A stretch of DNA of 58,346 bases, the filler included, from Bipalium vagum (lineage: Eukaryota), in the NCBI GenBank assembly GCA_037834085.1. It is 3 parts of 3 records of this genome, joined end to end, with 100 filler letters (N's around TTAATTAATTAA, not from the genome) between each part and the next. Parts side by side here need not be neighbours in the genome. Positions count along the whole stretch, not along the records: positions 42,384 to 58,346 come from JBBMKC010135658.1; 2 more parts are not named here. One strand, given 5' to 3'. This document shows, piece after piece, positions 2,701 to 57,959 of this stretch. Position numbers and translations under genes: made by a program. The stretch's first letter is position 1. The number at the start of each line of letters is the position of its first letter. A model generated the notes under the pieces. The model searched no databases. It was not told the origin of the DNA and saw nothing but the letters and a program-made list of their open reading frames with translations.

Positions 2701-5700
2701 GATCAGACTCAATAATCGTTGGAGAATTTCAAAGACCTGTCGAGGAATCATTTTTAATGCTAAAGGAAAAACACAAGAAAAACTTGTCGATCTTCCCACT
2801 CCAAAGGAAATTTAGTTTGGAAAAATTAACATTGAAAGATTTATGGCATGGGGACGAGCTACCATATGCCTTAAAGGTAATTTTAAAATGAGAATCTCAT
2901 GAACAGTAGAATTTAAAATTTTAATGATGGAGAATAGTTGATACTAATACTTCTTCAGTTTTACAATTTTTATCAAGTTTAATGGGATAGATTTAATATT
3001 TATTAATTTCCAAAATTGTTTGATTCCTCGAAAGAGTTTTATATCTCAAATTGATCCCCAGTTTTAATGATTATTCTACATTAATATTTTGAGAATATAA
3101 ACCGAAAACAGTGTTCATCTTTACAATTATTAAATTATTCAGAGTAGCCTGGCATTCATCTATCATTATCATCTAAAAACGATCAACGTATTCCGTAGAA
3201 ACGGAAACGAAATCGCTCATGAGAGTATTTGTAATGCTCTGAAAAAGAACATGAACGTTCAACCCTACCTGTCAATTTCGATGATATTTGACATTTGTTC
3301 AGCTGTAAAGGTAATCATTGCATGATTTATTAACAATTTTAGGCATTTCCCTTTCAGGCTTATGTGAGAGACATTCCTAACGGCTTAATGGAAAAGAGAT
3401 TGCAAAGAGAATGGTACAAAACTGCACGATTATTCAATTCTGAAGATATCAAGAAAAGATTAAAAAAGTAATGGTTATGCTTTGATAGACATTATTTATA
3501 TATTGGACCCTTGTGCAGTCTAATACAGAAATTACCTCAGGCTAACAGAAATTTGCTGTTTCACTTTCTGGTGTTGATTTCCGCAATAGTAAAAAACCAG
3601 AAGGAAAACACAATGTCCAGCAAGTCCCTCAGTATTGTTTTCCTTCCCAGTTTCTTTGAGAAAGTGATAAATATAACCGATATCAAAGAACTACCGTATT
3701 TCATGGAATTATTGGAAACCATGATTCTTAATGCAAAGTTTTTAATTGAGCCTGATATTTTCAACAAAATTGAGACCAATTTCAAGGAAATTGGAGAAAG
3801 TCTGGTCATTCAGTCTTCACATATTTCTGAAGAGAAACCTTTGGGTAAAACTTTATTTCCTGTGTTTGTAAAGTATCATAAACATTATAATCTGGTGAAT
3901 AATTATTTTATTTTAATTCGTACATTATACATATTTGAACTGTTCATTAAAACAAAATTATTTTTCTATAAATATACCTCTTATTTAGTTTTATATTATA
4001 TTTATTTCATGTGTGGATTATAAAATTGTTTTTATTTATTTATTCCTCTTCTTTCTTCAATTCTGCACAAATCTTTTCATACTTTTGTTTTAAAATATTA
4101 AAATAAAATAAAATATGAAATATTTTGAAGATTTCCTTCTACATAAAAACTTTGTCGATATAATGGATGTAACGATATGAATAGGAAATATTCCCTCTGT
4201 GACAGACAAGGCTTTTTTCAACCGATATTGATTAGGGTTCAACAGTGAAGGAATATAAATTCAGTATACAAAACAAATCTTAGAAAATATTTTTTTAAAA
4301 ATAAAATAACAATCGTTGTTGTATTGCATAAATATCTGTGTAGACAAAGTACAATAAGAAATAGCTAAAATAATATTTATTAATAACAAAATTTGATATA
4401 TGTACACTTATTTAACAAAAAATATTTTTTTACAAAATCGCAAATTGTTGATCGATTTCGGAATGATGAAAGTTTCGTAGAAATAATTCACAGAATAATC
4501 TTGGATCAGATTATCTCGAATGGAATGCTGTAAATGTTCTGTGGATGTGAATTAATAAAAAGCAAAAATATTAACATGAAAATATAGGGAAAAGAAAGAA
4601 TTGTTACTTTTAATTATTTTTTATCAGGATTATTTTAATTTCAAGAAATCCACAAAATAAATGCTAAAAAAATATTATTTATTTTTTCATTATTGATCGA
4701 GAAGAGAAGAACAAAAAAATTTCCGAATAAATCTTAAAAATTCGATTATAAATTACAATTTGATTTTGTTTTAATAAAATCAATTTCTGAGGTAAAATTT
4801 CGATTCATTGTGAAATGTCGTATTATTCTTTTTAATAAAATAAAATAAAATATTTTCAAAATTAAAAAAGATATTTTTATTCTTAATTTCTATGGAATGG
4901 TAGTACTATATATCATTTATTGTTTTAATAAATGAATTTTCCAACAGTTTTCAATTCTCGAAATCATATCATGTTGGACATGTCTCTCTTTGATCTATCT
5001 GAAATTTTCTTAATCATTTCCATAAAAATTACAGTTCTTTGGTAAAAGTTTCTATGACAATATTTTCAATTTCTTTTACCCAAAAAGTTTATTTATACCA
5101 ATATATTAAAGACATTCATTTGATTTTTTAAGAGTACAGTTTTGTTTTAATCTTTGCAAAATATTATTCTTGGGAAAAATATAAACTTATCAAAAGTACT
5201 AGAAATATTTGTTAATTGATAGAGATTCTACCTTGAGAAAGATATTTCTTTTTCACGAAAGTTCCCAATGTTTTTAATCATTTGGAATTAAATAGAAATA
5301 TCGGGCGGAGTCGGATATGACTTTTATCTTACCACAATTATTAAAAAATTAAAATTATGCAATGCTTTCGTTTTATGAATTTTAGAGTTTATACAAAACA
5401 GTGGGAAGTTTCACCAACCGGTAATATAACTGATAGACTGAAGTTGAGGTGTTTTGTCACAGTTATATTCTTCTGTTGTTTTTACTTAAGCAAAAATTTT
5501 CAAACATGAACCTCACCGTTTTTAAAATTAAATTATTTACTTTATAAAAATTTACCAACATTTATTGTGCCTTTTTTATTTAAAATATGTTAAAAACTCT
5601 AACTTAAAAAATGTAATGATTTTTAAAACTTTAAATTAAAAACATTTAATAATCGTTAATTTAGGCATGAGGTCCCTATTTAAAAATTTCAATCAAACTA

Positions 5701-12141: not shown

Positions 12142-15100
12142 TAAAAAAAATAAAAAAAATAATAATAAAATGTATAATAAACCAAATATAAAGCAAAAAA
12201 TATCTAACAAATTTATTGTTTAAATATTATTATAAATTTATTTTTTTATTATTAAACACACCATAATTATATCTATGGAAAATATAATATAAATTTAAAA
12301 TAAAAAGATCCAATGAAGTAATAAAGTTTCATAAAGTAAAGAAAAAAAATTCATTAACTAATTAGCAAAACTTGGTTGGAAAACCTATTCAAAACTACTT
12401 AGATGTCTTCAATAGTCACTCATAAATTGAAAGAGACTGACTTTCTGAAAATAGTTTTAATGTAATAAATGATGTTCATTGGAATTGAGTTTTTATATTA
12501 GACAATTCTCTTTAAATAATTTTGCTGAATTTCCAATTGAATGCGATCAGCGGAAAAATATTGGTTATATTATTTCTATTTTACTATTAAAATTAATAAA
12601 AATAACTTAGTTGAAATGAATTGGAAACAATTCATAATAATTCGGTTTAGTAGTTTTAATTGACTATATTTACTTGAGTCCCGGATTGTTTTATTAAATT
12701 AATTTATCCATATTAAACATGATCTTTATATTTACAAATTTTGAGGTATACCGTAGATACGCGATTTTTTTAGATTCATTTGGAGTGAAATTTGGGGAGT
12801 CGCGGTATTGTCGAGACACAACATTAATTTATTTTATTGGACACTGATTTCACATGTCAGAAACTTTAGAAACTTGTTACGATAGCTAGGGATCGAAATC
12901 GATCGTTTGTTGGCTCAAAAGACGAAATATATCTATTTAGTCGGGAGATGTAGCTCAGCGGTCAGAGCAGTGCATGCGCATGTGAAGGTCCCGGATTCGA
13001 ATCCCGGTATCTCCGATAAATTTTCACTAATACAATGTAAAGTTAATGTTGCTTTGAAAAAATATATATTTTGCCGGTTCACAATACATAGCATTTGGCC
13101 AATTTTTACTCTCGCGTTATACTCGCGTTTTGCATTTTTTAATACTTTTCCACCAAATTTTGTATGTCTCGCGTTATAGTCGGGTAGCGTTATACTCGCG
13201 TATCTACGGTAAGTCTTTTTATAATTAATAGTTCTTGCTAGTTTAGTTTTTATTTTCTACAATAACCTTTAAAATTAATAGTTATGTAATATTAGTAACA
13301 AATGCATTAGAAGAAGCGGGGCAGAAGTAAATTTCAACCATTTTAATACTACCTTTAAATGGCGAACTGGTCTGACTTTATTAACTAATATTATTAAATG
13401 ATACTAATACTTATAAGATATTAGGAGACATTTATAAGTTGACTTTATTTGACTGATTAATGCAGAGACAAATTATCGACATTTTAATTCGTTTTAGAAT
13501 TTTTTATTAATATTTTAAGGTTTTATCATGATATCATTTTTCTTAGATTTTAAATGATAATATTAATTAAATTTTCTGATTTGCTGAAAATATTTAATTT
13601 ACAATTATCTAGAATAATTTTTAAGAATTTATTATTAAATTATTTTTAACTCCCCAATGCAATTTTTGATAGAATGTTAAAATATATCATAAAGAGAGTC
13701 TTCAAATATTTGAAAATAAATTTTGCATTGGAGATGAACATAAAATATTTTTATTTAAGCCATATTTTAATATTGATTTAATTTTAGTAGACAAATAATT
13801 TGTCTTCTTTGCATTTTCTTGTTGAATATCCTACTGTTGCAACCGCAGGCTATGGATCGTTTCAGATCATTAAGATCAAACTATAATACCAGTGAATACA
13901 TAGTAGACACTAAAATTAATTATGATTTATAATGTTTATAATCTATAGGCATGGGGAATTCTTGTTGTCCACTCTATTTGTTCATATACCCTTATGCTGG
14001 GAGGAGTTCAGCTTATATTGTATATTTGTACATCAAACAATGAGGTGTGGACAAAACAGGTGTTCGATAGATTGCTATCTTTGGTCTTTCTCGGTGTCTT
14101 GTGTAAGTTGAAATTCATTTTAAATATAAGAAAAATAAAAATTCGCCAATATATTAAATAATACAGTTTTCCAAAACATTGAAATTATACCGTAATCGAA
14201 GTTTAATAACTTGTTTATTGTCCCCAAGCCAGATGTCTTCAGCTAGAATTTTCAGAAAATAAAATCTTAATCTTTATGTCCCAGAAATATTATTATCCAC
14301 AATATATAATAGAATATTTATAAATGAATAAAATTTGAATAACAAATGAATAACAAATTGAAGTCATACCATATCCTTCGTACTCACCCGATGTTGTAGC
14401 ATCAGACTTCCACTTGTTTTACATCATGTTGTATTTATAACGGGGTAAACGATTTGAGAACAAACAAGATCTGGAAAAGAGTATGTTAGGGTTTATTTAC
14501 TCTAAATTTCTAGAATTGTTTGAAAATGGGATTCGCAAAATTGCAGGACGTTGGACCCCTGTCTGTGACAATGCTGGATTGTATTTTTATTTCGTAATTT
14601 TATGATATAAAATAAAAATTTTGTATTGAAATTTTTGAATTAAAATGGTCACTTTCTGCCACTTTGAATATTAAAATGTGCTTAGTTTCTTTTATAAGTA
14701 CATAAATCAAAGTTGAAAAACCTCTTTTAATTATCGCTAGATGGGAAACCTCTTAACAAATTAGACTAAATGATTTGCTTAATTTCTGAATAAATTTTGA
14801 ATTATGTTTCTCTTTATTTGTAGAAACTAAGCTTGGAAATTCTTTTAATAATTATTTCACTTGAGATATATTATAAAAATATTTTATAATTTTTATATAA
14901 TGATAAAAAAAATTTGTTGGATTTCTTAAAAACTTATTCAGACTATTTTTATTAAAACGTTGTAAATAAATATTTATCTCTAATGTTATGTTATCTTATA
15001 TATTTATATTTTACTTAATTGTAATGTTTGATTTTTATGAATTTATAATATTAGGTTGTTCAGAAAGTTTTGCAAGTATTTTGTTTATTTACATTAAAAT

Positions 15101-18100
15101 TGTAAATAATTTATTTAAAAATTATTTTATTTTAATCCGTACAATTATATATTCCATTTAAAAGCTTATATATTACTCTCTTTAAAGTATTAATCCCAGA
15201 TAGCTCGTGTGTTAATAAACTTCTCAAGAGATATCATGAAATAGACAGGTGGTCCCAAAAATCTTTGTCTCTTTCACATATTTATTCAGACAGTATTTGA
15301 ATTAGGTTTTTCCTCATTTAAAAAACAATTTATATATTTTTGATAAAAATTGTAATAATTAGTTAATAATACAATGCAGTCTATATGTTTTGGGTCACCA
15401 TGTAAAAATGGACATAATAGTAGATTTTGGTTTAAATTAGAAGTTTTATGATTTGAAATACTTTAATTTAGATACATGCAGAGTATGATGGTTTTGGACG
15501 CAATCAAAGAAAATTGTATCATAAGTCTCATAAGTGTTCAGATCGCATGAATTCTGATGCCTATCATGATGTATTGAAGAAAGAGTTGCTGCCAATATAT
15601 GAGGCACAGAATATATTTCAACAAGACGGATCTCCATGTCATATGTCAAGATTGGTGACTTCATTTATGAAAAAGTCCATGTTTTATGTACTGAGTGATT
15701 GGCCGGCTCAATTATTAGATCTGAATATAATCGAGACTGTGTGGACTGATCTGAAAGCCAGAGTTGCTATATACAGACCGGCAAACAGTGAGACACTGTG
15801 TAAGAATTTCGAAGGAGCAGTAGGCGATGATTATAATATCTAAGATTAAAAATCTTTATGAAATTAAATTGTTTTTACAAGATTAATTAATAATATTTTA
15901 CCAAGAAGGATCAAAGAGGTAATTAAAAATAAAGATATGAATACAAAGTCTAAATTCGAGTATCTTAATTGTTCACGAGGTTGACTGTTTCTTATTTGAA
16001 ATGTAAATAAAAGATGTTTTACTGAAGTTTTAGTCTTCTATTTAAAAAACCTTTAAAATGGATGTTTTTGAAAAAATCGGTTTTTCTACATTTACAAAAA
16101 TAATGCTTTAGAAAGTTTTGTTTGGAAACATGTATTTCAACATATTCTCTGATATAGTTAAATAAAAACTGAATTAAAGTACTTATAGTATTATATGTCC
16201 ATCATTTTTATGGAAATAAGAGATGACCCAAAACATATAGACGGCAATGTAATAATCGCAAATTAAAAAACAATATTACTTTATCATTACATCCAAGATC
16301 CGAATCAGCTTCTGATGTCCTGGTACGATTTAAAATGCTGATCAGCCAGACTATGCAACATCGAAAGGAATAGATGGTAATCTCTAAAGCTAGTATCTGG
16401 CGAATACAGCGGGTGAGGTAGAACTTTATATTTAACGGTTTCTAAGTATCCTTTAACCGGTTGCGAAGTATGCTGCCGACCAATGTTATGCTGCAAAATG
16501 ACTTTAACATGTCTGTTGACTTAATATAGTCGTTCATCCTTTACTGTTTGGATTAAACGAATCAAATATGTGATTGCTTTGTTCGGCTGCAACTACATAA
16601 CTGATCAAATCAAATACACAGCATGAGGTTTTGTCTATAAATATTTGGCTTTGGCGTCAATGTTGATGTATGACCAAGATGTTTCCATTAAATTTTCTGC
16701 TTGGTGTTACTGTAATGCACCAGTTTTTAATCACCTGTTACAATGCAATGAAAAAATCCTTTTAGTTTTTGAGATTGAAGCAACCGCTCACAAGTACACA
16801 AACGACATTCTACAATAAAATATGAATAGCATAAAACTTTAATAACATAATTCTTGAGAGAGAATTGTGCATCATTTAATGAATAGATTTCAGAAGGAAA
16901 ACAAATGATTTTGTTTTTCAAAATATACATATAATTTCATATTTTTATAATATAAAATGATTTTTTAAAAACTTTTGATCATTTTGATTTTTTTATTTCC
17001 AACTTACTTATTTCAAAAAAATAATAAAATAAAATGATCCTTGAAATTAACTAAATAATATTAAAGTAATGTTAACTCCTATAAATAATAGTTTAATTTA
17101 TTATAAAAATATTTACTTATTTTAGTCTTGGCTTTTGTTTTGATTCTGGCCATGTATGATATTACAATTGGATCCATTGATGAAGTCACGTAAGACAACT
17201 ATTACTTTTTATTATATGCTTTGGTTTTAAAAAACTATTTTATTTTAGTATTAAAGTAAATGATAAAAAGGAAATAACATTTTCAGAAAATGTTATTTCA
17301 TATTTTTTATTGTTTTTAAATTAGTTGCTCATATTATTATTTATTTTATTTTATTTATTATTTATTATTATTATTATTAGTTGAAATTTTAGATAAATAT
17401 TTATTTAAAAACCTATTTAAAATAAAATCTTACTAAATCATTATTATTTTTGAGATACTTCTCTCTGAAATACTTTTAGCATTGTTTCTAATTCTGATAG
17501 AGTAAAGGTTTTGCTGAAGTGTCTTTAATCTTCTTGTTTGACAATAAAAATCTTTGGTTTCGAATGAAATAAAACGTTTTTACTTCAAAATAACAAAGTG
17601 ATAATGAAATACGAATCTTTCCTTGTGAAAACTTTTCTTTTAATACTTATGGGGTTTCCCTTTAATAATTCATTAGCTAATGTAAACCGATATGTTTTCC
17701 GTTTGTATAATTTACAACATATATTAAATGTTTCGATCTATCGATAACTTTTTGCATATTTATAGCCATTTAAAATAATTTTATTATTTTAATACGCATT
17801 ATGTACAATTTTATAATAATAAAATTAGATAGGTCCTCTCAATTTCTGTAACCATCTCAAAAAAAATATATTATTTAGGCTGTACCCTATGGGTTATGGT
17901 GCATTTCATTTGGTCATTTTCCCCATGTTCGGAATTTTAGGATTCTCCATTATTTTAACGGGAATTTCGTGTTTTACACCAAAACGGGGATGTATGCTTA
18001 TCATGGTCGCAATTTATCCCTTGATCCTGTTGCACATGGCCTCCTTTTATTTGATGATGATCATTAAAGAGCACGATGATTATGAGATTCTGAAATACTT

Positions 18101-18230
18101 CTATTTCTCTTGTGGAATATTCCTCCAGGCCCTATATTTATCAATGTGGCTTATTACTCTAATCGTTTTACCGATAAAGGAAATTACGGTTTTCGGTAAA
18201 AGAGATGCTGGTAGTATTACATTTCATTAA
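8757..18230 (+). CDS. Divergent adhesion-type (family B2) GPCR with GAIN/GPS and 7TM. Exons ~8757-9027, 9074-~9306, 9560-9672, 10364-10475, 10521-10823, 10867-11048, 11094-11135, 13791-13902, 13949-14102, 17126-17189, 17879-18230
   Basis: All joins from 9560 to the stop are GT-AG and phase-consistent. GAIN-A-like LANVT...SNDILHLL...LSVLDQKELLIW. GPS-like CNVW...C...CQCSQLGVW. Seven hydrophobic helices follow, including TM3 YTLMLGGVQLILY (cf. WMLxEGxxLY), TM6 YPLILL and TM7 YFYFSCGIFLQALYL (cf. SLQGFFI). The start codon and the 9306/9560 junction are uncertain. Confidence 0.75.
12751..13209. mobile_element. Non-autonomous Tc1/mariner-superfamily MITE (Tc2/pogo-like CCGTA termini) in a GPCR intron
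   Basis: 14-bp TIR CCGTAGATACGCGA...TCGCGTATCTACGG with TA on both sides (12749-50, 13210-11). Subterminal repeats of GCGTTATACTCGCG. No transposase ORF. Confidence 0.8.
12944..13015 (+). tRNA. tRNA-Ala-derived pseudo-tRNA, the same unit as in the 54-kb LTRs
   Basis: Acceptor stem GGAGATG/TATCTCC, A-box TAGCTCAGCGG, B-box-like GATTCGAATCC. The anticodon arm cannot form a canonical 5-bp stem with 7-nt loop. Flanks TTAGTCG and GATAAATTTTCACTAA are shared with the LTR copies. Confidence 0.75.
14340..14600 (+). mobile_element. Mariner transposase 3' remnant
   Basis: Translates as VIPYPSYSPDVVASDFHLF...FENGIRKIAGRW (YSPDLAPxDF motif) with stops. Confidence 0.7.
15480..15950 (+). mobile_element. 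Tc1 (DD34E) transposase 3' remnant
   Basis: ORF 15514-15843 contains FQQDGSPCH...DWPAQLLDLNIIETVW (WPxQSPDLNPIE motif). Confidence 0.8.
16270..16830 (-). mobile_element. Mariner (Mos1-like) transposase remnant
   Basis: FFHCIVTGD, QHNIGRQH and VLPHPLYSPDTSFRDYHLF in broken frames. Confidence 0.75.
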
Positions 18231-18531
18231 ATACAAACATATATTGATATCTTTACAGTTTTGAAAAAAGAGTATATTTACTTTATCAAAATGGAATAAA
18301 GTCCGTGGAAACTGACACCTTCCAGAGATCTTAATGGACTTCACAGTTGAATAATTTGATATAAAATATTTCAAATTCGTAAAGAAAAAAGAAAAAATAT
18401 TTATTTCGATTAATTCTACAAAATATCACTTATAAGAGTTGAGTTCCCAAAACGTGACTTCATTTTTAGATTACACCAACTTATTAATTATATATAATTA
18501 ATAATTTTTTTTTCATTTAAAGAAAGTTTTT

Positions 18532-19170
18532 TCAAAGATATTGATTTATCACACAATATAATGCAGCAGCGTCATAACCGAAGATCGCTTGAATTTCATA
18601 TGGTAAGTGTTGATAAACAAGAAACAACAGCAATCCTTATGTTGAAAAATCATCATTAAGTTTATAGGAATACACACACCAATATCACTGACCGTCAAGT
18701 CCTATCTGTAGGCCATATATAAGTGATTCCTTTTCCAAAGAACAAGATGATTTTGATAATTTCTTGGATCTCATATTCATTTATAGGTTTTATCCCAAAA
18801 ATGAAATGATGAAAAGATCTTAATATTTGAAAAAGTGGTAGAATAATACGTGAATTATTATTATGATTCACAATTGTTTATCTTAAATCTTCAAACTTTA
18901 TTTGATGTACTTTTGAAATGCGTGCTTTTCGAACTCTGTTTTCAAGTAATATTCAAATATCTGTTCTCTATGACTTTCCAATCGCAAGACAGTTAACAAT
19001 GTTTCTTATTTCTTTTGCTGATATTTTTAAGTTGATTTTTATTAATACTATTTTTAAAATTTTTGTACCATCAGCTATAAATTTGATTTCTCTTCTATGA
19101 AGATAATTGAACTCACCTCCACTGAATCTGGCATAAATAGTTGATCATGATCTGCACTAGGTTTTCTCAC
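18532..19170 (-). CDS. Probable 3' exons of an unidentified spliced gene
   Basis: The last join DLTVSDI-G|LLLFLVYQHLPYEIQAIFGYDAAALYCVINQYL* spans a short GT-AG intron. An exon-like RVRKPSADHDQLFMPDSVE ends at a GTGAGT donor near 19116. Intermediate joins could not be resolved. Confidence 0.3.
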
Positions 19171-19471
19171 TCTACTAAAAGATTAGATTTTTATATATAC
19201 CAATATTTCTTATATATTCCCCTGTTTTTTATACCTTATTAATGAAATTTAAATAAATCTGAAAATTTCTCAAACCAAAACTGGATTAATAAATCATTTA
19301 AAATTAAAGTCATAATGAACAATTAAAACATAATGAAGAACATTATATTAGGGTGTCACATAAAAATGAACGTTTTTGTTATAATGATATAAAATAAAGA
19401 AAATATGTTCTTGAATTAATAAATATAAAACATTGATTATTTATTTTGAATATTTAAAATTTTCTGAATAA

Positions 19472-19571
19472 NNNNNNNNNNNNNNNNNNNNNNNNNNNNN
19501 NNNNNNNNNNNNNNNTTAATTAATTAANNNNNNNNNNNNNNNNNNNNNNNNNNNNNNNNNNNNNNNNNNNN
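19472..19571. other. Assembly spacer N44-TTAATTAATTAA-N44
   Basis: A 100-nt gap with a six-frame stop linker; artificial. Confidence 0.97.
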
Positions 19572-21565
19572 GTCATGATATTGTTCTCAAAATTATGAAA
19601 TTTTTATCATTTATATTACCACTGACTTTTGGGACACCCTGTATATATGCAATTAACTCTTTACTTTTCCACCATTTGTTATAAGCTTTATTATACATGT
19701 ATTTATAATGAAGTTTCAGAAAGTCCCGTAACAATTAAATCAAATCACAAATTTATCCAAAACTGTTAAGAATCAAAGATTTTAGTTCTTTACAATTTAG
19801 AACTGAAAATTCTTCTAAAATTTAATGTGATGTTCTATTTAGCTAAAATCATTTTTTGTAAAATCATGTCAAATATACACCGTATATACAAGTTATTTCT
19901 TTTTGTATAACCCCAAGGTTCAGTGAGTGGAGAATTGATTTTCTGTTGGATCATAGACCGGTCAATTTAAAATCAAGATGACTTAAATATATAACACGGT
20001 CTGTTGTATTACCTATCAGTAATCAGGTGTTAAAATTGATCATTTTTCCTTTAAAATAATCTTCAATCTCAGTAAAAAAAAGGTTTACAACAAATTTTTA
20101 AACATTTTGCATATAATCTGTGGTTTTTGTTAAATCTCCGATGAACAGACAGTGTTGATTTGTTCACATTTTTATTATGCATATACTTAATGTAAAATTG
20201 GATTAATTACGTGTTACCCAGTTGTATTAGAACACAAAAGTGAAATTATGTTGACTTTTGAAATGTTGAAACTTTATCTTTTGCAATAAATGTTCCGTGG
20301 ATCATTTTTTCCATTTATAAAGCTAACTCACTAAGGTTACATACATTTTTATTTATTTTATTATATGACTTTTCTCTAATTTCAGTTAAATGTTCGAAAT
20401 ATCTTTGACTAGTCTCTGCATTTATCGATGGAGTCTCCAGAATTTTTAACATTTCTCAAGAAAAATCTTCTCATAAACCTGTGTTGGATTTAAAACTAGG
20501 TTAATTAAAAATCTCTAAAAGAAATACCCCAAAATCTTTTAAATTTTCTTAAACCTTAAGTACCTTTTGTTTGATAGCATCAATTTGTAATACCGTATTT
20601 CTCGAGTAACAGCTTTCCTTTATATCATTTAAATTTACATTTATGTAGTATTATGTTCCTGAAAATATAAGACTAATTATTAATACTAGATTTTATTGAT
20701 CACACTTTATTTATTGACTTATTTTTCGAACTATTGACTTTTATAAATTAAAATTTTTAGCAATGGTTGTTACTAAATTTTACTTAGTTCAAAATTCTAA
20801 TTTTATTGCCCAGAAAAATGCTTTCTTTTAAGTTTTTCTATTATTTCAACCTTTTTTACTTTTTCTTATTTTTTTTACTTAAATTCTGAACCAATTTTAA
20901 ACAATTTAAGAAACATTGACAATTTGTGCGTATAGAAATAATGTTTCAAACTGAATCATACCCCATCGACAATACTGCAATTTCCTATACCGTGGATAGC
21001 ATTCCCAGGATTGTTAAAGAGTACACATCATTCACAATCAAAAGTTATTGATAAATTTAAGTAACATTAGTCTTCATTCATTTTACGTTTGACTAAAGCA
21101 ATTAATCAAATCCTTAATTAAATTTTAATCGACCTTTCACTACAGCTTCGAAAAAGTTGAAACTATATAAATGATAAAGTCTTAATTAATCCCCTCGATT
21201 TTCACTCCAAAGATCCTAATATAATTTGATTAAAAATGATTTGGATATGTTTGTTACTATCAACATTTTCAAGACAAAAAAATACTTGATAATTTTTCAA
21301 TGTTCTCTATAACCGTTGAAATCATAATAATATAATATAATTTTTCAAATATAAGATAGAATAGTTTTTCAATAATTCAATATTACCAATAAATGAAAAT
21401 TTAAAAAATAACAATATAAAAAACCAATTTTATAAAACATCAAGAAATAGAATTTAAATTTTTAAAGAATATAAATATTTCGATTTTTATTTTAGCGAAT
21501 TTTAAAAGCAATAAAATTAAAAACTCAATTTCCTTAAAAACTTTCAAATTTGATTATCTTTATCA

Positions 21566-23441
21566 TTAGGTTGGTGCAAAAATAATATCGTTTTATAGCT
21601 ATAAAAGAAAAAAATTCATAACTAAAAGGAAAATAAACTTTATTAATCAAAATAATGTCCATGCGAGTCAATACATTTCTGCCAACGAGTGATGTGTTTA
21701 TTTATGCCTGTGGAATAAAAGTCTTTTTTTGGAGGCAACAAACTCATCAAAAGCTATTTCAGCATCGGGTCGGGTTTCGAAGCACATATTGACCAAGAAA
21801 TTATCCAGAGCCTTAAAGAAATGGAAATCTGTTGGCGAGAGGTCTGGTGAAAATTGGGGGTGAGTCAAAATCTCGTAGCCCAAATTGTTTATTTTCTGCA
21901 ATGTTTTTTGGGCGACTTTTGAGCGTGGTTGTCTTGCAACAGAGTTGGACCTTTTCTACTGATCAGTCCCGGACAGATGACTCGAAGCTTCCTATACATT
22001 TCGTCTATTTGCGGGCAGTATGTTTCTGCTGAAATAGTTTCGCCCGGACTTAGGAAGCTGCGATGGATCAGACCGGTCATGGACCACCAAACAGTCACCA
22101 TATTTTTAGGGTGCAAATTTAGCTTTGGGAAATGTTTCGGAGCTTCATTTCTATCCAACCATTTTGCCGATTATCCCAGAGAATCCATTTATCATCACAC
22201 GTCACGATTCGATTGAGAAATGAGTCGAGGTTGTTGCGCAAAAGCAGAGAAGATGCCATGTCGAAACGACGATTATTTTATTTTTCGCTCAAGTCATGTG
22301 GCACCCACTTATACATCTTTTTCACCTTTCCAATCTCATCTAAGTGTCGAAGTACTGTTGCATGAGCAACCGCAAGTTCCGCTCCGACTTCCCTTGTGAA
22401 TTTTGATGAATCAACTTCGATTATCTTCATTAATTTATCATTGTCAACTTTACGTGAACGACCGTGACCATCCTCATCTTCAAGGGTACCATCTCCTTGA
22501 CGAAACCGTTTAAACCAACGTTTCACCATACGCTGATTGACAGTTTCAGGACCAAATGCATTATTCATTTTGCGAGCCGTGGACATTTTGTTTCGGTGTT
22601 AGTGAACCGGGTTTACCTGGCATCACCCAAGCTGCTTTGCGTTTTGGATTGTAATAGCGAATCCATTTTTCGTCTCCTGTGATAATTCGATGCAAATAAC
22701 TTTTCCTTTTTTTCTGTGAAGAAAGACATGAAAAATTGTTTTTCGCCGTTCAATGCATCTTTCTGTCAATTCATGTGGGATCCAAATTCTTAATTTTCGA
22801 ATAATTCCTAAAGCTGTTAGACGTTTTGAAATGCATTGTTAAGTCACATTTAATGCGACAGCCAGATAAAATTGTGTTTAAAATGGATTTTCGTCCAACA
22901 GCCTTCTCAAATCTCTATCTTCACATTGTTTTTATGACTTCTCATGCTCCTTGTCGTTCGTATCATTTGGTAATTTTTAAAACGGCAAAACCAATCTTTA
23001 CATGTAGTAATCGAAGGAGCATGTTCTCCATATGTATCTCGAAGCAAGCGGTACGTTTCCCCTGCAGCTTTCTTGGCAATAAAGTAATGTAGAATTACTT
23101 CCAGCAAATGTCATTTATTTGGGATGAATATTGACATTTTGAATCGCTATAATTAAACAAGGAATATTAAAACAACTGTCTCGTGATATTATTAATTATA
23201 TGATATTTTTGTTTATAAATCAATTTAATATAATTTAGATACATATGCAAACAAAATTTATATTATCATTTTTAAAAAAACCGGAGTCATAGTTGTACAC
23301 CTAATAATTTATAATAAAATTTACTTTCAAAATTTTACTTTCAAAAAATTAGCAAAATATATTGAATTTTCAAACAAAACATTTATTAAAATGAATGAAA
23401 TTAATGACTTGCCAAAAAACATTATTTTTGCACCAAACTAA
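21566..23441 (-). mobile_element. Mariner element, Hsmar1/cecropia-like, degenerate, containing a second mariner
   Basis: TIRs TTAGGTTGGTGCAAAAATAAT and ATTATTTTTGCACCAAACTAA. Transposase pieces 22278-22586 (RWFKRFRQGD, WVPHDL), 21889-22158 (VTVWWS, LLQDN) and 21698-21901 (HPQFSPDLSPTDFHFF). Confidence 0.9.
22587..23304 (-). mobile_element. 5' half of a Mos1/mauritiana-like mariner nested in the previous element
   Basis: Single TIR TTAGGTGTACAACTATGACTCCGG. N-terminus MSIFIPNK...KKAAGETYRLL...DWFCRFK, then WIPHELTE and IITGDEKW, ending abruptly near 22587. Confidence 0.8.
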
Positions 23442-42383: not shown

Positions 42384-42789
42384 TAAAAGTTTATACTAAT
42401 TAAGTAAAAAGTTATACTTTTAAAGTAAAAACTTATCCATTTAAAGTAAAAACCCTATACATTGATGCTATTTCATATGGAACATAACCATATTATTTAA
42501 AAATTATGTGTGAATATACAATAAAAATTTCAGTCAGATAATCGACGAGGAACAGTCCAAAAGTTTCGGGAATAAAAAATATGAAAATGTTTAGTAAAAA
42601 ATAAAAAAATAATCATAAAATACGGTATTTTAATACTATATTACTTTTATCTAATAATAAAAATCGCATTTGTTTAAATAAATATTTACGCTTAAATATG
42701 GCATACAAAGCGGATAACATAAATGTATCAATGGAAAAATTTCGAAATTTATAGGGATATTTGGGAACGACAAGTACTTCCGTCTGGTG

Positions 42790-43280
42790 AAAAATCCACA
42801 TGTTTTTATGCATAATAATGATCCGAAACATTGCGAAATTTGCAAAAGCTATTTAGTAGATCTTCAAAGTCAACAAATACTAGAAATAATGGAATGGCCA
42901 CCACAGTTACTAGATCTCAATCCGATCGAGTTGCTATGGGAGGGACTTGACAGAAATGTGCGAGTAGAGCACCCATCTTATTTAGAAAACCTTTGGCACA
43001 TATTGCGAGTAAAATGGAATGCAATACACCCCGAAACATTTCGTAAATTAATTACTCGTATGCCAAAGATCTGTGTCACTGTAATAAAGAAAAAACGAGA
43101 ATATTTTGACGAATCAAAAATTTAAATATATGTCGCTTGTCATTAAAAATTTGTAATAAAAATGTTTCATATTTATTAGTTTCTGTATAAACATATATTT
43201 AGCACAAATCATAATTGAAAAAGTTTATTTATTCAGCAGTTTAAATAAAAATAGTACCTGCTTCAAACTTTCTGTCAGTA
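42790..43280 (+). mobile_element. Tc1 3' remnant
   Basis: FMHNNDPKH...EWPPQLLDLNPIELLW...MPKICVTVI...YFDESKI. Confidence 0.85.
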
Positions 43281-43507
43281 GTTATTATATAAATATAATG
43301 TATAAATTAAATAAAAGATAAATAATTCATAAAATGAATATTAAAAACAGTTAAAGACTGTTTAAAAGTTGATCTCCAAATAGTAAAATATATAAATGTG
43401 AAGAAGTACAATAATAATGAATTAAAACAAATTGTAATTTTTTGATAATTTAGAAATGAAATTATAAAATTACTGTTAACCAAATAAGATTAATCACAAA
43501 AAAATAC

Positions 43508-43789
43508 TTGGTTGGCATCAAGACCCCAAAACTCAAGCTCCTCTTCAAACAGCGGACCACATACATCTGTCGGATAATGCAATTTACCCGTTCGATAATA
43601 ATTAAGAATCTGAGCAAAGACAGCTGGATGGCGATCAAAGAAAAACTCGTTTAGGATGGGATCATAATTCGCTAATGCTTTCGTCAGTCGAGAAAGACGA
43701 GTTGCAGGAATCTTTTTCAAAGTAGCTTTATACGTTTCGTGTCTAAATCCACCAATATTTAAAATCACTCTGTGATCTAAAATATTCAT
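43508..43789 (-). CDS. Shaw: Shaw/Kv3-family voltage-gated potassium channel, T1 (BTB) domain exon; later exons not seen before the gap
   Basis: [29 protein letters not shown]...[41 protein letters not shown] is the Shaw T1 signature. An AG acceptor lies directly before the ATG and a GT donor follows DANQ. Confidence 0.95.
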
Positions 43790-47008: not shown

Positions 47009-48302
47009 CAGGGTGTTCCATAAGTCCCCGCGGAAAGTAAATGAAAAAATATTTCTTAAGCTGGATGAGATATTTAATCACTTTCTTAAAGACAACTCTT
47101 TTAATTTTTATTTCATATAAAAATATTTACAACAATTGTTCGAAATGACTACCATTAATTGATATAAATAAATTCATCCTTTTTACAATTTTTAAAAAAT
47201 ACGCTATTCAAAGTTTCTGTGATAACACTTTATTTCTTTGGTAATTTTTGTTTTTAAATCGTCAATATATTTTATTTCAGATATGTATATCCTATTCTTT
47301 AAATGGCCCCATAAATAGAAGTCAAGAGAAGTTGAATCTGGTGAACGTAGAGCCCATCGAATTGAGCCACCTCTTCCAATCCATCTGTTCAGATAATGAG
47401 CGTCAATATACCGTCGTATATTCGTTAAAAAATGCACAGGAACTTCATCTTTCTGAAATACCAGAGATCGTACTTTGTACATTTTCATCACTTCAAATAT
47501 AAAATAGTCTTGAAGCATTGATAGATAATTTTGGCCATTAACAGTCTCATCTTCAAAGATATACAAACCGATACAAAGCACATCAAAATTTACCTTCTGG
47601 GATTTTCTAGCAGTTTCAAAAGTAACATGTGCATTACTTTCTCACCAATATCTGACGTTATGTTTATTTACTAATCCTTTTAGGTAAAACGTTGCTTTAT
47701 CTGAAAAGAAAATATTTTCTTGAATATTCACATTTTCTAACATTGGGACCAGGGTTTTGCACATCTCAACTCTGTCTTTCAAATCCTCTTAATGTAATTC
47801 CTGCGTGAAATGGACCTTAAATTGTTTCAATGATAACTGTTCTCTCAAAATTCGATGGGTTGCTGTTCACGAAATAGAGCAGGTGGTTGCAACAGACCGA
47901 ACACTGCATTGTGGGTCACTTTCAATAACTTCAATCATTTTCTCAACCTCATTTTCAGTGATCAGCCTTGGTCCTTCAGAACGTTCATGATCTTCCACCG
48001 AGCCAATCTCACAAAAACGATGAAAATTCTCTCTTATAGCTCTTTCACTTGGCTAAGTTTTCCCAAATTCGGCATGTAATTTCCGCTCAACACAAATTGA
48101 GTTGAATTTGTCCATTAAAAGTACAATTTTAATTCTTAACTTCAAATCAAGTGGCATTTGCTAAATCTAATTATAAAAGATTAAAACAAAACTTAGACTT
48201 ACATAACCTTACCTTAATATTATATAAATAGAAATTTCAATCGATTGAATTTAATGAAAGATATTTAAGTTTACTTTCTACGGGGACTTATTGGAAACCC
48301 TG
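47009..48302 (-). mobile_element. Full-length degenerate DD41D (rosa/Visitor) Tc1-mariner element
   Basis: TIRs CAGGGTGTTCCATAAGTCCCCG..GAAAGTAAA and TTTACTTTCTACGGGGACTTATTGGAAACCCTG with TA duplication. IFFSD, then FQKD-(41 aa)-LDF including RWIGRGG and RSPD. Confidence 0.9.
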
Positions 48303-51300: not shown

Positions 51301-54024
51301 GTGACATTATGAATCTTTTATAATTATATTATACAAAATTATTTTGCAAGATATCTGACATTCTCTTAAAACAAATCATAATAATAATGAACTGGATATT
51401 GATCGAAAAATAAAATAATATTAAGTAAATAAATATAAATTGATATAAATAAATAAATATAAATTAAGAGTATAAATAAATAATTTAAATATAAACAAAA
51501 TAAAAATGAATATTAATATAAATAAATAAATATTAATATAAATAAATAATGTAAATATAAACTAAATATTTAAGGGTTTTTTGGGGAATATTTATATGAA
51601 CACTTTAAAGAAACCAATACCTTTTTTCAATCAATTTCTTGTTTCTGTTCAAAAAACCAACTAGAATGATTTATTGAGTCTTAAAAGTGAATGGATGATT
51701 ATTGAAAAGGGAATATGGTCTGTTCAGTTCAATTATTTTTTACTTCGAACTTCGGTATTGGAAATGCAAAATTAAATTTATAATCGACTTAGGCTGTATG
51801 GAACTTTTAAAAATTTAGGTTTTAACATATCTTTGGATCTCATGACACATTATGATATTGGTTTACTGCATATCTTGATGGGTACTATTAATACAAATAA
51901 GTTATAAATTGATAAGAAAAAACCAAATTAACAGGATTTTTAAAAAATAAAAGATTGTAGATTCTATGGAGCGAAGGCTTTCCACAATATTATATGCAGC
52001 TGGAGGATATACATAATATTAACAATATATTGTTTCCTGTATATAAATATAATATACATATATAATAATATAAATGTTGTAATTTTTTTACTGGACAATT
52101 GAATGTATCAGACTGTATATGTCAGCAGCCTCAATAAAAAACACACAAGAAAATTTATTGAAATTCTCACGAACACTACGATGAATCAAATGGTTTGGTA
52201 GAAGGTTAGAGGTTGTTAAAAAAGCTAAGAGTTTAAAAATTGTCGAATATCTAAAAGTTTCGTGCCAACACAGAACTTAAATATGGTAATTTGATAATTA
52301 TATATATATGAAATCTTGAGACACTAAGATCACTAATTTTCTTCACATTAAAAACCTTAGGCTTAGTTAGATATTCAGTTAGATATATACGATTGTACGT
52401 AGTGCGATCCAAAACCACGTGGATTACGTAAGAAAAAGATGGAATCTTGAAAACCATGTAGTATACTTTTTTCTAAACAATTTTCTACTTCCAAATTACA
52501 TGATTATCTAACCGGTTTTAAAATATTTCAGACTGTAAGTCTGAAAACCGATCTGGTCGTCGCCTTTGAAAATTTTGGGCGAATTTCCCTCCAATATGCA
52601 ATTAAGCTTTCTTTATCAAAACATTCTGTTCATAGGTGCCAAACATTTACTTTATTTTCAAAATCCCCCCCTGTTTTGCGGGACAGCACCTTTCATCACC
52701 GCAAATATTGTTTGATGTTTACCATCCTAAATCTGTCTGTTTTTTCTAACTGTTGTTTTCAATCTATAGTTTTCTTGTTCCAATATGTTAAAACTGGTAT
52801 GTTTTCATTTTCTTTGTCAATAGTGAATTTTATATTATAATTTTATTTTCTAAACTATTAATAAATTAAAAACCCAATGTTGACCATAAAGGTGATTTCA
52901 TAGAACCTCCCTCAGCTTGCATGTACCATTCACTGTTGAATAAAAATCAAATGCTTTTGTATTACAATAATAAATTTGTCCATAATGTTTTTATCAACTC
53001 TATCTTTTCAAAGAGAAGCTTATAAATATTTGAATTAAATTTTTATTAACATAAATTTGTTTCAGCGATGACTGTTCCCAAAAAGAAACTCCACACGATT
53101 TTAAAGAAAAGCAAAAGTGGTCGTAAACTTGTGAGTCATTGGGGAAAATGCGTAAAGTAATGGTTTCTATTTTGATAGATGAAATTTTGTTTAAGCTGTA
53201 ATTTGTTCATTTGAAGTTCTATGTTGAAAACCGCCATTTATTTCTTCACAATCTAATAAATAATTACCACAAACACCAAATGACACCATGTAAGCTTTCT
53301 CAGACTTTTCCTTATATTTATAAAATTGCAAAATTCGGAACTATAATTTAAATAAACTTAATTTTCTTTGTAATTCAGCATATTACTGTATGTATATATT
53401 ACATTCCTTACAAATAACTTTATTGAGAACTGATCTTCTTCTGGTTAATTTAATTATTGTCTACTACTTTTCATAATCCGTGAAAATGAATTTGAAGAAA
53501 TTTCATTAAAAAATTTCAAAGTAATTTTTGAATTAAAAATTATTGTTTCTTCGAATTTCGAAAATTCAGCTTTTTATTTTTAGTATTTTTTGACTGATTA
53601 ATTTTTTTTTAAAAATTTTATGTAATAATTTACGGAAGGCTTACATAGAGATTTTGATAAAAAAAATTATTAATAAAATAAATAAAGTTATTTCAATAAA
53701 AATCGATTTGGTGTAACATTATTTTTATTTTTAGCTTTTTACTTTTAAGGTTTTTGTACAATATTTACTTATATATTTCTTGATGATGATTGTGAACTAA
53801 TACTTAACTAAATATTATTATCTAATTTAATATTATAAGGTTAAAAGGTTAATTAAAAAGTGACCTTACAAAAAATATTATTGTTTAAATAATTAAATTT
53901 TATAATAATTAAAAAACTATTATTATTAAGGTACAATTTTTAAAGCCTTAAATTGAAAAAAAGTACTTTTATACATTTGAATATCTTATTTAGTATAAAA
54001 TAACTATGTTAGTTGAAAATTAGT

Positions 54025-54096
54025 CGGAGATACCGGGATTCAAACCCGGGACCTTTACATGCGCATGCACTGCTCTGACCACTGAGCTACATCCCC
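54025..54096 (-). tRNA. tRNA-Ala-like unit inside the 3' LTR (pseudo)
   Basis: Acceptor GGGGATG/TATCTCC with G3:U70, A-box TAGCTCAGTGG, mutated B-box GGTTTGAATCC, aberrant anticodon arm. Confidence 0.75.
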
Positions 54097-54269
54097 CGAC
54101 TAATTTTCAATTTATCTCACATCCCCCTCCTTTGAAACTCACATCCATACCCTTAACCGCCCCGAGTCTCTTTACTTCTATTTCCATTCAATTCCTTTAC
54201 ATTTTTACTTTCGAGACCTCGTCCTCTGGTTGGTGTCCTGGTGTGGTCGCCATGTTAGTGAAAATTAAT

Positions 54270-54341
54270 CGGAGATACCGGGATTCGAACCCGGGACCTT
54301 TACATGCGCATGCACTGCTCTGACCGCTGAGCTACATCCCC
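54270..54341 (-). tRNA. tRNA-Ala-like unit inside the 5' LTR (Pol III promoter intact)
   Basis: Same acceptor stem, A-box TAGCTCAGCGG, B-box GGTTCGAATCC, aberrant anticodon arm. Confidence 0.75.
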
Positions 54342-55589
54342 CGACTAATTTTCAATTTATCTCACAAACTACACAAACTGAAAATTATATAATTTATTGG
54401 AATCATTTAAATAAGTATAAATATAACAAATAAATCTTCCATTATTTCTTAGAAATTGAAATTACTAAATATTTTGCCATTTAATAATGTTAAGAAAAAA
54501 ATATATTCCAAAAGATTATATTACTGAAAAAGTAATTATTTATTAGGTTGGAAAAAAATGTGTGATTTTATTATTTTTTTTACGGTATTATATTTATTTA
54601 ATAGCAAATGTGTCGAAATGTCTTGTAAATGAAACATATTTTTCTGCTCTACATTAGCATTTTTTTCATTTTTATTTCAGCTCAAATAAAAGATGATATT
54701 ACATTTATATAACATAAATTAATTTACCTAATGATAGAAAAATTATTATATTTCAAATTGATATATAAATCGATATATTCCAATTGTGAATCAACTAAAA
54801 AATTACTTTGAACTACTTAAACAAAAAACGAAGTTTATTTTATTTTCATCTAAACATGGAATTTAATCATCATAAATACATTTATACATTACTAATTTTG
54901 CTTATTCCAAGGTATAAAATCCAACAAATACATTTATCAAATACTTTGTAGTTAAGTGTATTATCAATAGTTATATAATTTTAAAAATATTATTGAAAAT
55001 CACAAAGACTACCTAACCTACTACAACCTAAGATAAAAAAAATTTTTAAAATGTTAGTAAAATAAATTTAAAAATTAAATATTTTCTTCTTAATACACTC
55101 GAAACTCTTGGTTATGGCTTTTTTATTATAATAATTATTAATTAATTTAAGCAATTCAATTAATTTAAAAATGTGATTTATTAATTAATTTTAAATTTTA
55201 AAAAACTGAACCACATATTTTTTGAAATATATCATTTTTCTGATACATAATTTATAATTTACCAAAATTAAGTAAAAATTTTCAGATAAATTTAAAAATA
55301 TATTGTTTTAAGTCTATATTTATAAATGAAACGTGATACTCCAGAAATCGAAATCACAAAATGATTCTTCTTTTTAGATAATGAACAGAAAATTAAAAAT
55401 TATTTTAAATCTTAAATTCCTATCTTGGGGGAGCAGGAATAATTAACAAAACAGATAATTAATTTTTTACCTTCATGAATTCTGTAAAATAGTAAAAAAT
55501 ATTTAAATAATAATTAATATTTTTTTGAAAAGTAAATTTTTGTGATGAGAATAAAAATAATTGATTGATGATTGATTAAATATTTTAGT

Positions 55590-55720
55590 AACATTACTCT
55601 TTAAGAGAAAAACCTCTACAAAATTATTAATAAGAGAAAATCAGTTACGGCAATGTCTGGTAAATAGGTCTGGTGCTCCATAATTTCCCAGCCAAGCTTA
55701 TTTACTGTGTCCTTGGTAAA
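55590..55720 (-). mobile_element. Mariner remnant next to the 3' end of the R2-like element
   Basis: VNKLGWEIMEHQTYLPDIAVTDF. Confidence 0.6.
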
Positions 55721-55740
55721 GAAAATAACATAAAACTTAC

Positions 55741-57055
55741 TTAACTTACGTGCCTCGGGGGTATACATATTGACCAGGTCCCCTTTCCTACCTCAGGTTC
55801 CTCCCCAGTCCGACCACCGGATACCTGTACACTTTTCTGAGATACCTGAGACTGAGATTCGAGCCCTATGTATGGCTGTTACTAAGGACATCCGTACGGC
55901 CACACACTCAGCCCGTTGCACGTCGACCAGATCCGGATACGGCATGCCTAAACGGAATCATTACAGCAGAGCCCTCCAAAGACATCACAGTCATCATTAC
56001 CTTCAGGTCCAAGAGCGCGAACCCGAGTTCCTTGAGCAATAACCATGTAGTAAAACACCAAGCCCCCTCTAATTGAGTTTTATACCTGCTAAAACGGCTG
56101 CACTAGTCCCGTCGGGGTCTACATACCGATGTACCGCGCTTATATCATATTTACGGCCCTTGATTTTATTAGTTTCCTCCAAGTTTACGAAACTTCAGTC
56201 GCTCACAATCTGGGCATCTAAAACCAGAGGAGGAACACTGTCCTTAAAGGCTACGATATCTGGCTTTAGAAAACTGCTGTTATAGGGGATTTTCGGTTCG
56301 ACCTCGACCCAAGATTGGAGTTACCTCTATCTATTCCTCAGCTTACCCGCCTTACTATAAGACGCTACTAACACTACAGCATGTTGTTCAACTACCTCGA
56401 TCAACTTACTGCGATCTAAGATCACCTCTTCGAGTAGCTTTTCACTCCACATATCTTAATCGATCGTAGGAATTCCAAGAATCCCGCATCCGTCGTCCAC
56501 TTGCCGTCTAATAACTCTAGACCTCTAGGTAAGATATCAGAGTCTTCGCGCTCCTCGCAAGCCAGGTTTCTCTTCCTTCTCTCCTCAGTCCGCAAATCAC
56601 AAATCGCTTTCTCCAAAGCAACTTGGTAATCGGATTCCTTTCGGTAATGCGTAATGCACTTTCCAGTCCTGTCACAAATCCGTCCAAGCATCTCCGAAGT
56701 GAAAACCTGAACGCCTTTTACTTTCAAAGGTAAAAAAAAATGCCTCAGCCTGAATAAAGCCGGAAATCTCGTCTTTCGTGACGTTTCTCCTCTTCACAAC
56801 TTTATCCTTCATTGCCGGCGGAGATGACACGACCCCTGGTAAGATGCCCGCATCACCAAAAATTGGGTCGGAGTTCAGAGGATCTAATTTCAACGGTTAT
56901 TCCGACGTTGTTTTAATCATGTCCTTTTCCTGCTTACTGTGCCATCTCATATTGACAGTCGAACTCCTCTGGTTTTTGCAAACCTTCGGGCAGATCGTGC
57001 ACCGAGCATCGTCTTCGCGCAACGCATCTGGCTCGTCTTTGCCTTGAGAGCCCAT
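55741..57055 (-). mobile_element. R2-clade non-LTR retrotransposon derivative: zinc finger, Myb and RLE, with RT deleted; pseudogenised
   Basis: GC-richer island. CTICPKVCKNQRSSTVNMRWH (C2H2-like), KRRNVTKDEI...AEA...DRTGKCITHYRKESDYQVAL (R2 Myb-like), then EPKIPYNSSFLKPDIV...VLDAQIVSD...KGRKY...N*RG...LLKELG (PD-D RLE). Contains stops and frameshifts. Confidence 0.82.
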
Positions 57056-57959
57056 GAATGCTAGCTAATTATTTAGTTTCGAGCTTTTCATAAATTGCAC
57101 GAAGTTGTGTACCCAACTGAAGCCGACTACGTAAGCCAGTGGGAATGAATAACTAAATTTACCAACAAACCGAAGTATACAAGATTTTGAGATATTTTAG
57201 ACGGCAGATAGAAAACTGAGTTTAGTTGTCATTGGGGATGTCAAAATTCAAATGTTTCGGGATTCTGTAACTATAACTGGGCGTCTGTGACTATATTTAG
57301 TGAAAAGTAATGGAACAAATGTTGAAGAACACAACTATCAATGAGTGATATTGAATTGAATAGTGTTTTTCACGAGTAAAGAAAGGCCACTCGAATTGTT
57401 TATCGCTTTCTTTGCAAAGAACAAAAAGATAAATAAAGGCAAAATAATTGTTGTTAGAAAATTAAAACCAAATTTTGTTGGAGAGGTAGATACCATGAAA
57501 CTTTTTGGAATGAAATTATGTTATTCCAGTAACACTGAAGATACTGATGTATCAAATCAATTTAATGATTAAGAGAAAACGAAGCTAACAATGGAATATT
57601 TAAAAATATCAATAGTGTGCGATTGCATAAATTGTTGCATAGATACGGGAAAATATTGATGACATCAACATTTGATATAGGTCACACTATGTTAGTTCAG
57701 CATTATATAATAGTATGAGCTTTACCCAATACACAACAACAAAGAAGACATCCAATGCATCTGGAATCAAAAATAGATTTGTATCACTACATCAACTTGA
57801 ATTGAATGTTTCTAGGGGTAAAAACCTAAGAGGAATTGAATGACTGAAGAAATGGCCACAGTCTTGTCGAAGAGGGAGTTATGATGTTTGAAATTTGTTT
57901 TAATTGGTAAATATTTTTGATTACCGTGTTTTTTTTTAAATGAATCTTAAATAAGATTC

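Follow-up and report, generated by a model that had tools for sequence, protein, structure and literature searches.

Within a 58,346-nt stretch of DNA from Bipalium vagum (GenBank assembly GCA_037834085.1; hereafter, the window), what appears to be a pair of neighbouring alanine-tRNA genes is a single 360-bp non-coding long terminal repeat (LTR) element, lying with its target site duplications at positions 54002-54371, in the part of the window that comes from record JBBMKC010135658.1. This element is very probably one copy of a highly repeated, non-autonomous miniature retrotransposon with terminal repeats (TRIM) of the Helenus type, built around a pseudo-tRNA derived from tRNA-Ala. Helenus denotes TRIMs that carry tRNA-derived sequence in their LTRs, and the term 'TRIMp3' groups them with the 5S-bearing Cassandra and Ajax (Kojima 2024, PMC10886601).

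All coordinates are those of the whole window, and the element was read on the minus strand, both directly and by script. Behind an upstream target site duplication (TSD), TAGTT (54367-54371), stands a 5′ LTR of 114 nt (54253-54366) that runs from TGTGAG to CTAACA. Its first 25 nt (54342-54366), presumably U3, form a leader that contains a TATA-like GATAAAT at LTR positions 6-12 (54355-54361) and precedes a 72-nt tRNA-like unit (54270-54341), which takes up positions 26-97 in each LTR. Six nucleotides past this unit there is a run of four T residues (T4; 54261-54264), a possible terminator for RNA polymerase III (Pol III) and a possible border between R and U5. The primer binding site (PBS), TGGCGACCACACCAGGAC, 18 nt in length (54235-54252), adjoins the CA of the 5′ LTR and opens a purine-rich internal part of 131 nt (54122-54252) without gag or pol, which closes with a 12-nt polypurine tract (PPT), AAAGGAGGGGGA (54122-54133), immediately 5′ of the 3′ LTR. 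The 3′ LTR is 115 nt long (54007-54121), has the same TGTGAG...CTAACA ends, a tRNA-like unit of its own (54025-54096) and a T4 run (54016-54019) at which the element RNA would end, and is followed by a downstream TSD (54002-54006) identical to the upstream one. The parts add up to 114+131+115 = 360 nt, and the sole open reading frame (ORF) among them is an antisense TTG frame of 63 codons without a Pfam match.

Re-reading the order TSD-LTR-PBS-PPT-LTR-TSD thus upholds what the first-pass annotation had proposed, namely that the apparent tRNA-Ala pair is one minus-strand LTR element of TRIM architecture, with LTRs of 114 and 115 bp ending in TG...CA, an LTR identity of about 96% and an exact 5-bp duplication (AACTA, or TAGTT on the minus strand). 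The 131-bp core that it described is indeed non-coding, but 131 nt is the length of the entire internal part, and the core between PBS and PPT, which is also purine-rich, measures 101 nt (54134-54234). The chance of an exact 5-bp match of the flanks is ~0.003 at the local base composition, and a TSD of 4 bp or 6 bp is incompatible with this copy. Three substitutions and a one-base indel separate the two LTRs, which corresponds to an identity of 97.4% over substitutions (96.5% with the indel counted) and to a Jukes-Cantor K of 0.027. In the 3′ LTR, two of these substitutions (54081 and 54042) have turned CpG into TpG, and one of them damages the B box there; such changes hint at CpG methylation in this genome, in which case an age derived from LTR divergence would be an overestimate.

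The Rfam tRNA model scores 48.4 bits in the 5′ LTR and 47.4 bits in the 3′ LTR, against a gathering score of 29, and the acceptor stem retains the alanine-type G3:U70 pair. Each unit has an A box, TAGCTCAG(C/T)GG (TAGCTCAGYGG; 54324-54334 in the 5′ LTR and 54079-54089 in the 3′ LTR), and a B box, which reads GGTTCGAATCC in the 5′ LTR (54281-54291) and is mutated to GGTTTGAATCC in the 3′ LTR (54036-54046); these scores and located boxes bear out the earlier claim of a 72-nt tRNA-like unit with both boxes in each LTR. An Rfam scan of the piece shows tRNA alone in the LTRs, with no 5S rRNA. The unit is, though, a relic derived from tRNA-Ala and not a working tRNA. ARAGORN reports both copies as 'tRNA-???' with an anticodon of two bases, the Rfam alignment gives a 6-nt anticodon loop and two mispairs at the stem ends, and the predicted fold retains the acceptor, D and T arms while the normal anticodon arm and its 7-nt loop are absent. 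Because there is neither a 7-nt anticodon loop nor an alanine anticodon, the unit cannot be taken as a genuine tRNA-Ala gene. It is not self-priming either, since the complementarity of its 3′ end to the PBS stops after TGGCG.

These observations bear on an alternative in which two genuine tRNA-Ala genes or tRNA pseudogenes have arisen by tandem duplication, and in which PBS, PPT and TSD resemble such sites by chance. Both units exceed the Rfam threshold and keep the G3:U70 pair, and a local duplication of 245 bp might in principle explain the direct repeat, but the anticodon loop does not have 7 nt, the PBS and PPT stand exactly at the LTR borders and the 5-bp TSD is exact (P ~0.003). Moreover, the entire 360 nt is repeated hundreds to thousands of times with TG/CA boundaries, and this alternative is therefore extremely improbable.

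The evidence for that repetition comes from the contigs of the only public run that contains the locus (0.91 of sampled words), mapped onto positions 53600-54800 at a likeness of at least 80%. In this run, 6078 contigs match the element, and the word depths, which are sums over contigs and not true copy numbers, rise from 25-100 in the flanks to 15,000-23,000 in the internal part and 43,000-274,000 in the LTRs, that is, to hundreds to thousands of times the depth of the flanks (two single-copy flank contigs have depths of 13 and 23). Depths of this size suggest about a thousand internal parts and some ten times as many LTRs. At the LTR termini (54007, 54121, 54253/54259 and 54366/54367), diverse AT-rich loose ends accumulate (agreement ~0.45). 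The element is thus not a local duplication, because thousands of contigs match it and their unrelated flanks start exactly at the LTR ends, and the check for a dispersed family with other LTR and internal-part copies, as suggested by the first-pass annotation, comes out in its favour. The anatomy, the TSD, the repetition bounded by the LTR ends and the decay of the tRNA part are all directly observed.

A tRNA head with A and B boxes also invites the view that the 115-nt unit is a tRNA-derived short interspersed element (SINE) moved by a long interspersed element (LINE), with two SINE copies flanking unrelated DNA. The LTR-like sequence is ~15-20 times deeper than the internal part, so that most units stand alone, as this view would have it, but an excess of solo LTRs is usual in such families (529 vs 144 and 1114 vs 151 for LTRs and internal parts; Kojima 2024, PMC10886601, Table S3). 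Furthermore, the unit stops at a fixed ...CTAACA, with neither a poly(A) nor a simple-repeat tail, the TSD encloses the whole 360 nt and not the single units, and the internal part is itself highly repeated and joined to an LTR in further contigs (records 2-6), as well as in record 7 (2750 bp), where the internal part and the 5′ LTR lie at the contig's own end. We therefore consider the SINE explanation very unlikely.

Both LTRs of the window copy share a minority base (54056 and 54301) where more than 90% of the family has another, as would be expected if a single RNA had served as template for the two. Variants present at more than 5% are clustered around the anticodon, in the trailer and within the internal part and spare the A and B boxes, except for the Y in CAGYGG and the B-box mutation of the window copy. 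The PBS is kept in most copies, the listed variants being A>G at 54242 (~16% by depth) and C>T at 54249 (~5%). A second copy or a solo LTR was found nowhere else in the searched piece of the window, two scans of bacterial and archaeal genomes gave no match to the element, and scans of viral contigs gave GC-rich chance matches or nothing. Two contigs of the same run fuse 54366 to 54007 ('goes back 360'), an LTR-LTR junction as found in head-to-tail elements or in a 2-LTR circle.

With respect to classification, the Helenus features can all be traced in the window copy: TG...CA direct repeats, a tRNA-derived part in the LTRs, a PBS, a PPT, miniature size, no gag or pol, the Helenus box motifs (TRGCY...YGG for A and GGTTC for B) in each LTR unit, and a dispersed family with a TSD, which in this copy is 5 bp. 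Since every structural feature of the Helenus definition is present, the kind of element is already known, having been published in 2024. The first-pass annotation had given Helenus as the name of tRNA-bearing TRIMs and 4 bp as the TSD length of their animal members, in agreement with Kojima 2024 (PMC10886601), and the 5 bp of the window copy departs from the latter figure; the 4-bp TSD is, however, a trait of the animal lineages described so far and lies outside the Helenus definition.

To assess whether the family itself is new, the consensus file of Kojima 2024 (PMC10886601) was searched with ten k-mers (9-19 nt) that sample the LTR tips, the PBS, the core of the tRNA-like unit and the internal part. 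None had a match in a related context in that file, a single 9-mer occurring inside an unrelated fungal LTR, and no PBS starting TGGCGACC... is among the animal Helenus or autonomous elements of the PBS figure in the same work. No later literature on Helenus or TRIMp3 was found after Kojima 2024. Compared with that consensus set, the family looks undescribed while its kind is described, which is consistent with the earlier expectation of a probably undescribed family.

A life cycle can be proposed for the element, in which we infer which polymerase acts, which tRNA primes and what kind of element is the partner. RNA would be made from the 5′ LTR, most likely by Pol III via the internal A and B boxes; the transcript would have to pass the weak T4 of the 5′ LTR and would terminate at its counterpart in the 3′ LTR. 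The tRNA-like unit and its trailer would then serve as R (~80 nt), with a U5 of ~8 nt, and strand transfer would take place via the repeated R. Minus-strand DNA would be primed at the 18-nt PBS by a tRNA of the cell, probably one for arginine (GACC...GGTCG type), and the PPT would prime plus-strand DNA. Finally, an autonomous LTR element, recognising the LTR tips TGTGAG...CTAACA and using a PBS identical to that of the TRIM, would supply reverse transcriptase and integrase in trans, and integration would duplicate 5 bp.

The primer suggested here follows from the PBS, which implies a tRNA ending in ...GUCCUGGUGUGGUCG-CCA, with the acceptor stem GACCACA/UGUGGUC and a discriminator G. We take an acceptor pattern of GACC...GGTCG to be that of an arginine tRNA of the TCG/CCG type, which would make this tRNA a candidate primer. 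A string search of the literature for this PBS, and for a PBS string ascribed to Drosophila 412/mdg1, returned unrelated primers only.

For the partner, JGI metagenome contigs were scanned for CA followed by the PBS, which gave three GC-rich chance matches and one AT-rich contig (24% GC), Ga0307474_10451249 (hereafter L001), in which positions 778-1005 contain an LTR, a PBS and a reading frame. L001 has a 122-nt LTR-like unit that starts with TGTGAG and ends with CTAACA, and directly past it a PBS, TGGCGACCACGCCAGGAC, in which 17 of the 18 bases are those of the TRIM; the differing base is the A>G variant at 54242 already mentioned for the TRIM family. Between the shared tips, the LTR of L001 is unrelated to that of the TRIM; TATA-like and AATAAA motifs are present there, whereas a tRNA-like part is absent. 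An ATG immediately after the PBS opens a frame of 29 codons that reaches the end of the contig and has no Pfam match. Judged by these sequence features, L001 is a candidate for an autonomous helper of the RNA polymerase II (Pol II) type that would share integrase sites and primer with the TRIM.

Given that the element is a TRIM, Pol III drive is moderately probable. Its A and B boxes are conserved within an otherwise decayed tRNA, and a mere 25 nt of LTR precede the tRNA-like unit. Cassandra, the 5S analogue, yields transcripts from its own Pol III promoter, and Pol III transcription was left unvalidated for Helenus (Kojima 2024, PMC10886601). The two T4 runs in the LTRs are the only sense-strand T4 runs of the element, and the absence of any further T4 over 241 nt is unusual by the composition of the surrounding genome (P = 0.05), though not by that of the element itself.

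Alternatively, the TRIM template could come from Pol II or from read-through from a host promoter, the tRNA-like unit being a passenger (for example, a SINE or a tRNA copy inserted into an ancestral LTR) that alone would yield at most a short Pol III RNA of ~85 nt. The T4 just past the tRNA-like unit and ahead of the PBS, at which Pol III should often stop, speaks for this possibility, as do the TATA-like GATAAAT near the LTR start and the motifs of the related L001 LTR, which lacks the tRNA part. On the other hand, the TRIM LTR is without AATAAA, the A and B boxes have been retained over thousands of copies despite the decay of the anticodon arm, the 25-nt leader offers little space for a Pol II promoter and Cassandra is, as noted, transcribed from a Pol III promoter. 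On balance, a Pol II origin of the template appears rather doubtful.

Several points nevertheless tell against the Pol III-driven, helper-mobilised TRIM proposed above. At the T4 of 54261-54264, which follows the tRNA-like unit and precedes the PBS, a considerable fraction of Pol III transcripts would terminate, and full-length Pol III RNA therefore needs read-through; that said, the layout looks like a shared feature and not a defect, because the Helenus LTRs quoted for oyster and rust fungi carry a T4 too. By the element's own purine-rich composition, the absence of further T4 runs is not significant (P = 0.74), and no RNA run among the public runs contains the locus. The arginine-tRNA primer is a candidate that derives from the PBS sequence and the acceptor pattern of arginine tRNAs, and L001 ends 88 nt past its PBS and is too short to show gag-pol. 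Finally, the depths behind the copy-number estimates are sums, and since one full copy alone was read base by base, a single insertion is the basis of the 5-bp TSD.

The piece of the window around the element has a GC content of 17-43% per kilobase, mostly ~20-30%, and contains (TAA)n. At 54666-54800, ~300 nt from the TRIM, contig depth is 3,000-4,000, against 25-100 nearby, which indicates another repeat of moderate copy number; no terminal inverted repeats are evident for it. The first coding exon of a Shaw-type (Kv3) K+ channel lies at 43490-43789 on the minus strand (T1/BTB_2, Pfam E = 1e-28) and is 88-93% identical to insect, flatworm and metagenome animal sequences; the TRIM is ~10 kb upstream of it. 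This similarity does not discriminate between animal groups; judged from the sequence, the source would be an animal, probably an arthropod, and an atlas search gave a lead that leans to arthropods. Two remnants of Tc1/mariner-type transposases are also present, one (DDE_3) at 47204-47581 on the minus strand (55-58% identity to its best database matches) and one at 42787-43125 on the plus strand with a weak DDE_3 match. Contigs reached via the Shaw and transposase proteins have 41-46% GC and contain no TRIM copy. A block of 39-43% GC at 55650-57100, set in DNA of ~20% GC, holds several broken minus-strand frames, one of them with C-x2-C...H, and includes a TE-like (transposable element-like) ORF at 56422-56727; none of these frames has a Pfam or protein match, and the block is probably a decayed, unclassified mobile element.

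Elements of the Helenus type are miscounted as tRNA genes; both units of the window copy pass the Rfam threshold, and thousands of copies would inflate counts of tRNA-Ala genes or pseudogenes in the annotation of this genome. The tRNA source and the PBS of the family are new for Helenus, as is a 5-bp TSD in an animal, and the known range of the group is wider for it, which fits the view of repeated origin put forward in Kojima 2024 (PMC10886601), and the general picture of the kind, as published in 2024, is unchanged by it. The T4 between promoter and PBS makes it a compact test of Pol III as the source of the retrotransposition template, while L001 suggests the hypothesis that a TRIM must share LTR tips and PBS with its helper. 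It is conceivable, with a chance somewhat below even, that the family represents an independently born, tRNA-Ala-derived animal Helenus lineage with 5-bp TSDs and an autonomous, short-LTR partner of the Pol II type, which would have no more in common with it than the six bases at the LTR tips and the 18-nt PBS, as is seen in L001. If so, this lineage would (i) belong to the most successful known TRIMp3 families, its internal parts numbering about a thousand and its LTRs perhaps ten thousand, and (ii) provide a matched pair, sharing tips and PBS and differing in the presence of the tRNA unit, for testing the takeover of an LTR by a Pol III gene.

Among known systems, Helenus is the closest. The window element shares with it the pair of short TG...CA LTRs, each with a tRNA-like unit whose A and B boxes are conserved and whose tRNA part is non-functional, the PBS for a tRNA 3′ end, the PPT and the lack of coding capacity. 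Its 360 nt fall within the Helenus length range of 311-1263, a T4 run follows the tRNA-like part here as it does in the oyster and rust-fungus LTRs quoted, and LTRs far outnumber internal parts in both, although their abundance here seems above that of most listed families. A TSD of 5 bp sets it apart from the 150-odd listed animal families, all of which have 4 bp (Kojima 2024, PMC10886601, Table S1), whereas fungal and plant Helenus and the nemertean Ajax have 5-bp TSDs (Kojima 2024, PMC10886601). Likewise, the PBS, TGGCGACCAC..., has no counterpart in the animal PBS figure of that work, where the arginine-primed wasp families have TGGCATCC. The arthropod Helenus described there come from chalcidoid and cynipid wasps only; their LTRs measure 167-323 nt and the complete elements 537-1263 nt, and the window element is about half as large.

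Cassandra and Ajax resemble the element in carrying a Pol III-type small-RNA gene in each TRIM LTR, with promoter and terminator within the LTR, but theirs is derived from 5S rRNA and not from tRNA, and sequence similarity to them would not be expected; Ajax further shares the 5-bp TSD in an animal, and Cassandra is known to form tandem arrays with shared LTRs. PbTRIM of ants is similar as an abundant animal TRIM with additional solo LTRs and AT-rich insertion sites, and differs in its LTRs of 152-184 nt with no tRNA-like part reported, its tRNA-Leu PBS and its 4-bp TSDs, mostly ATAT (Zhou & Cahan 2012, PMC3532108). Finally, tRNA-derived SINEs (SINE2) have in common with the element a tRNA head with A and B boxes, a short length and a high copy number, but they are without LTRs, PBS and PPT, end in a LINE-derived or A-rich tail and are copied by LINE target-primed reverse transcription.

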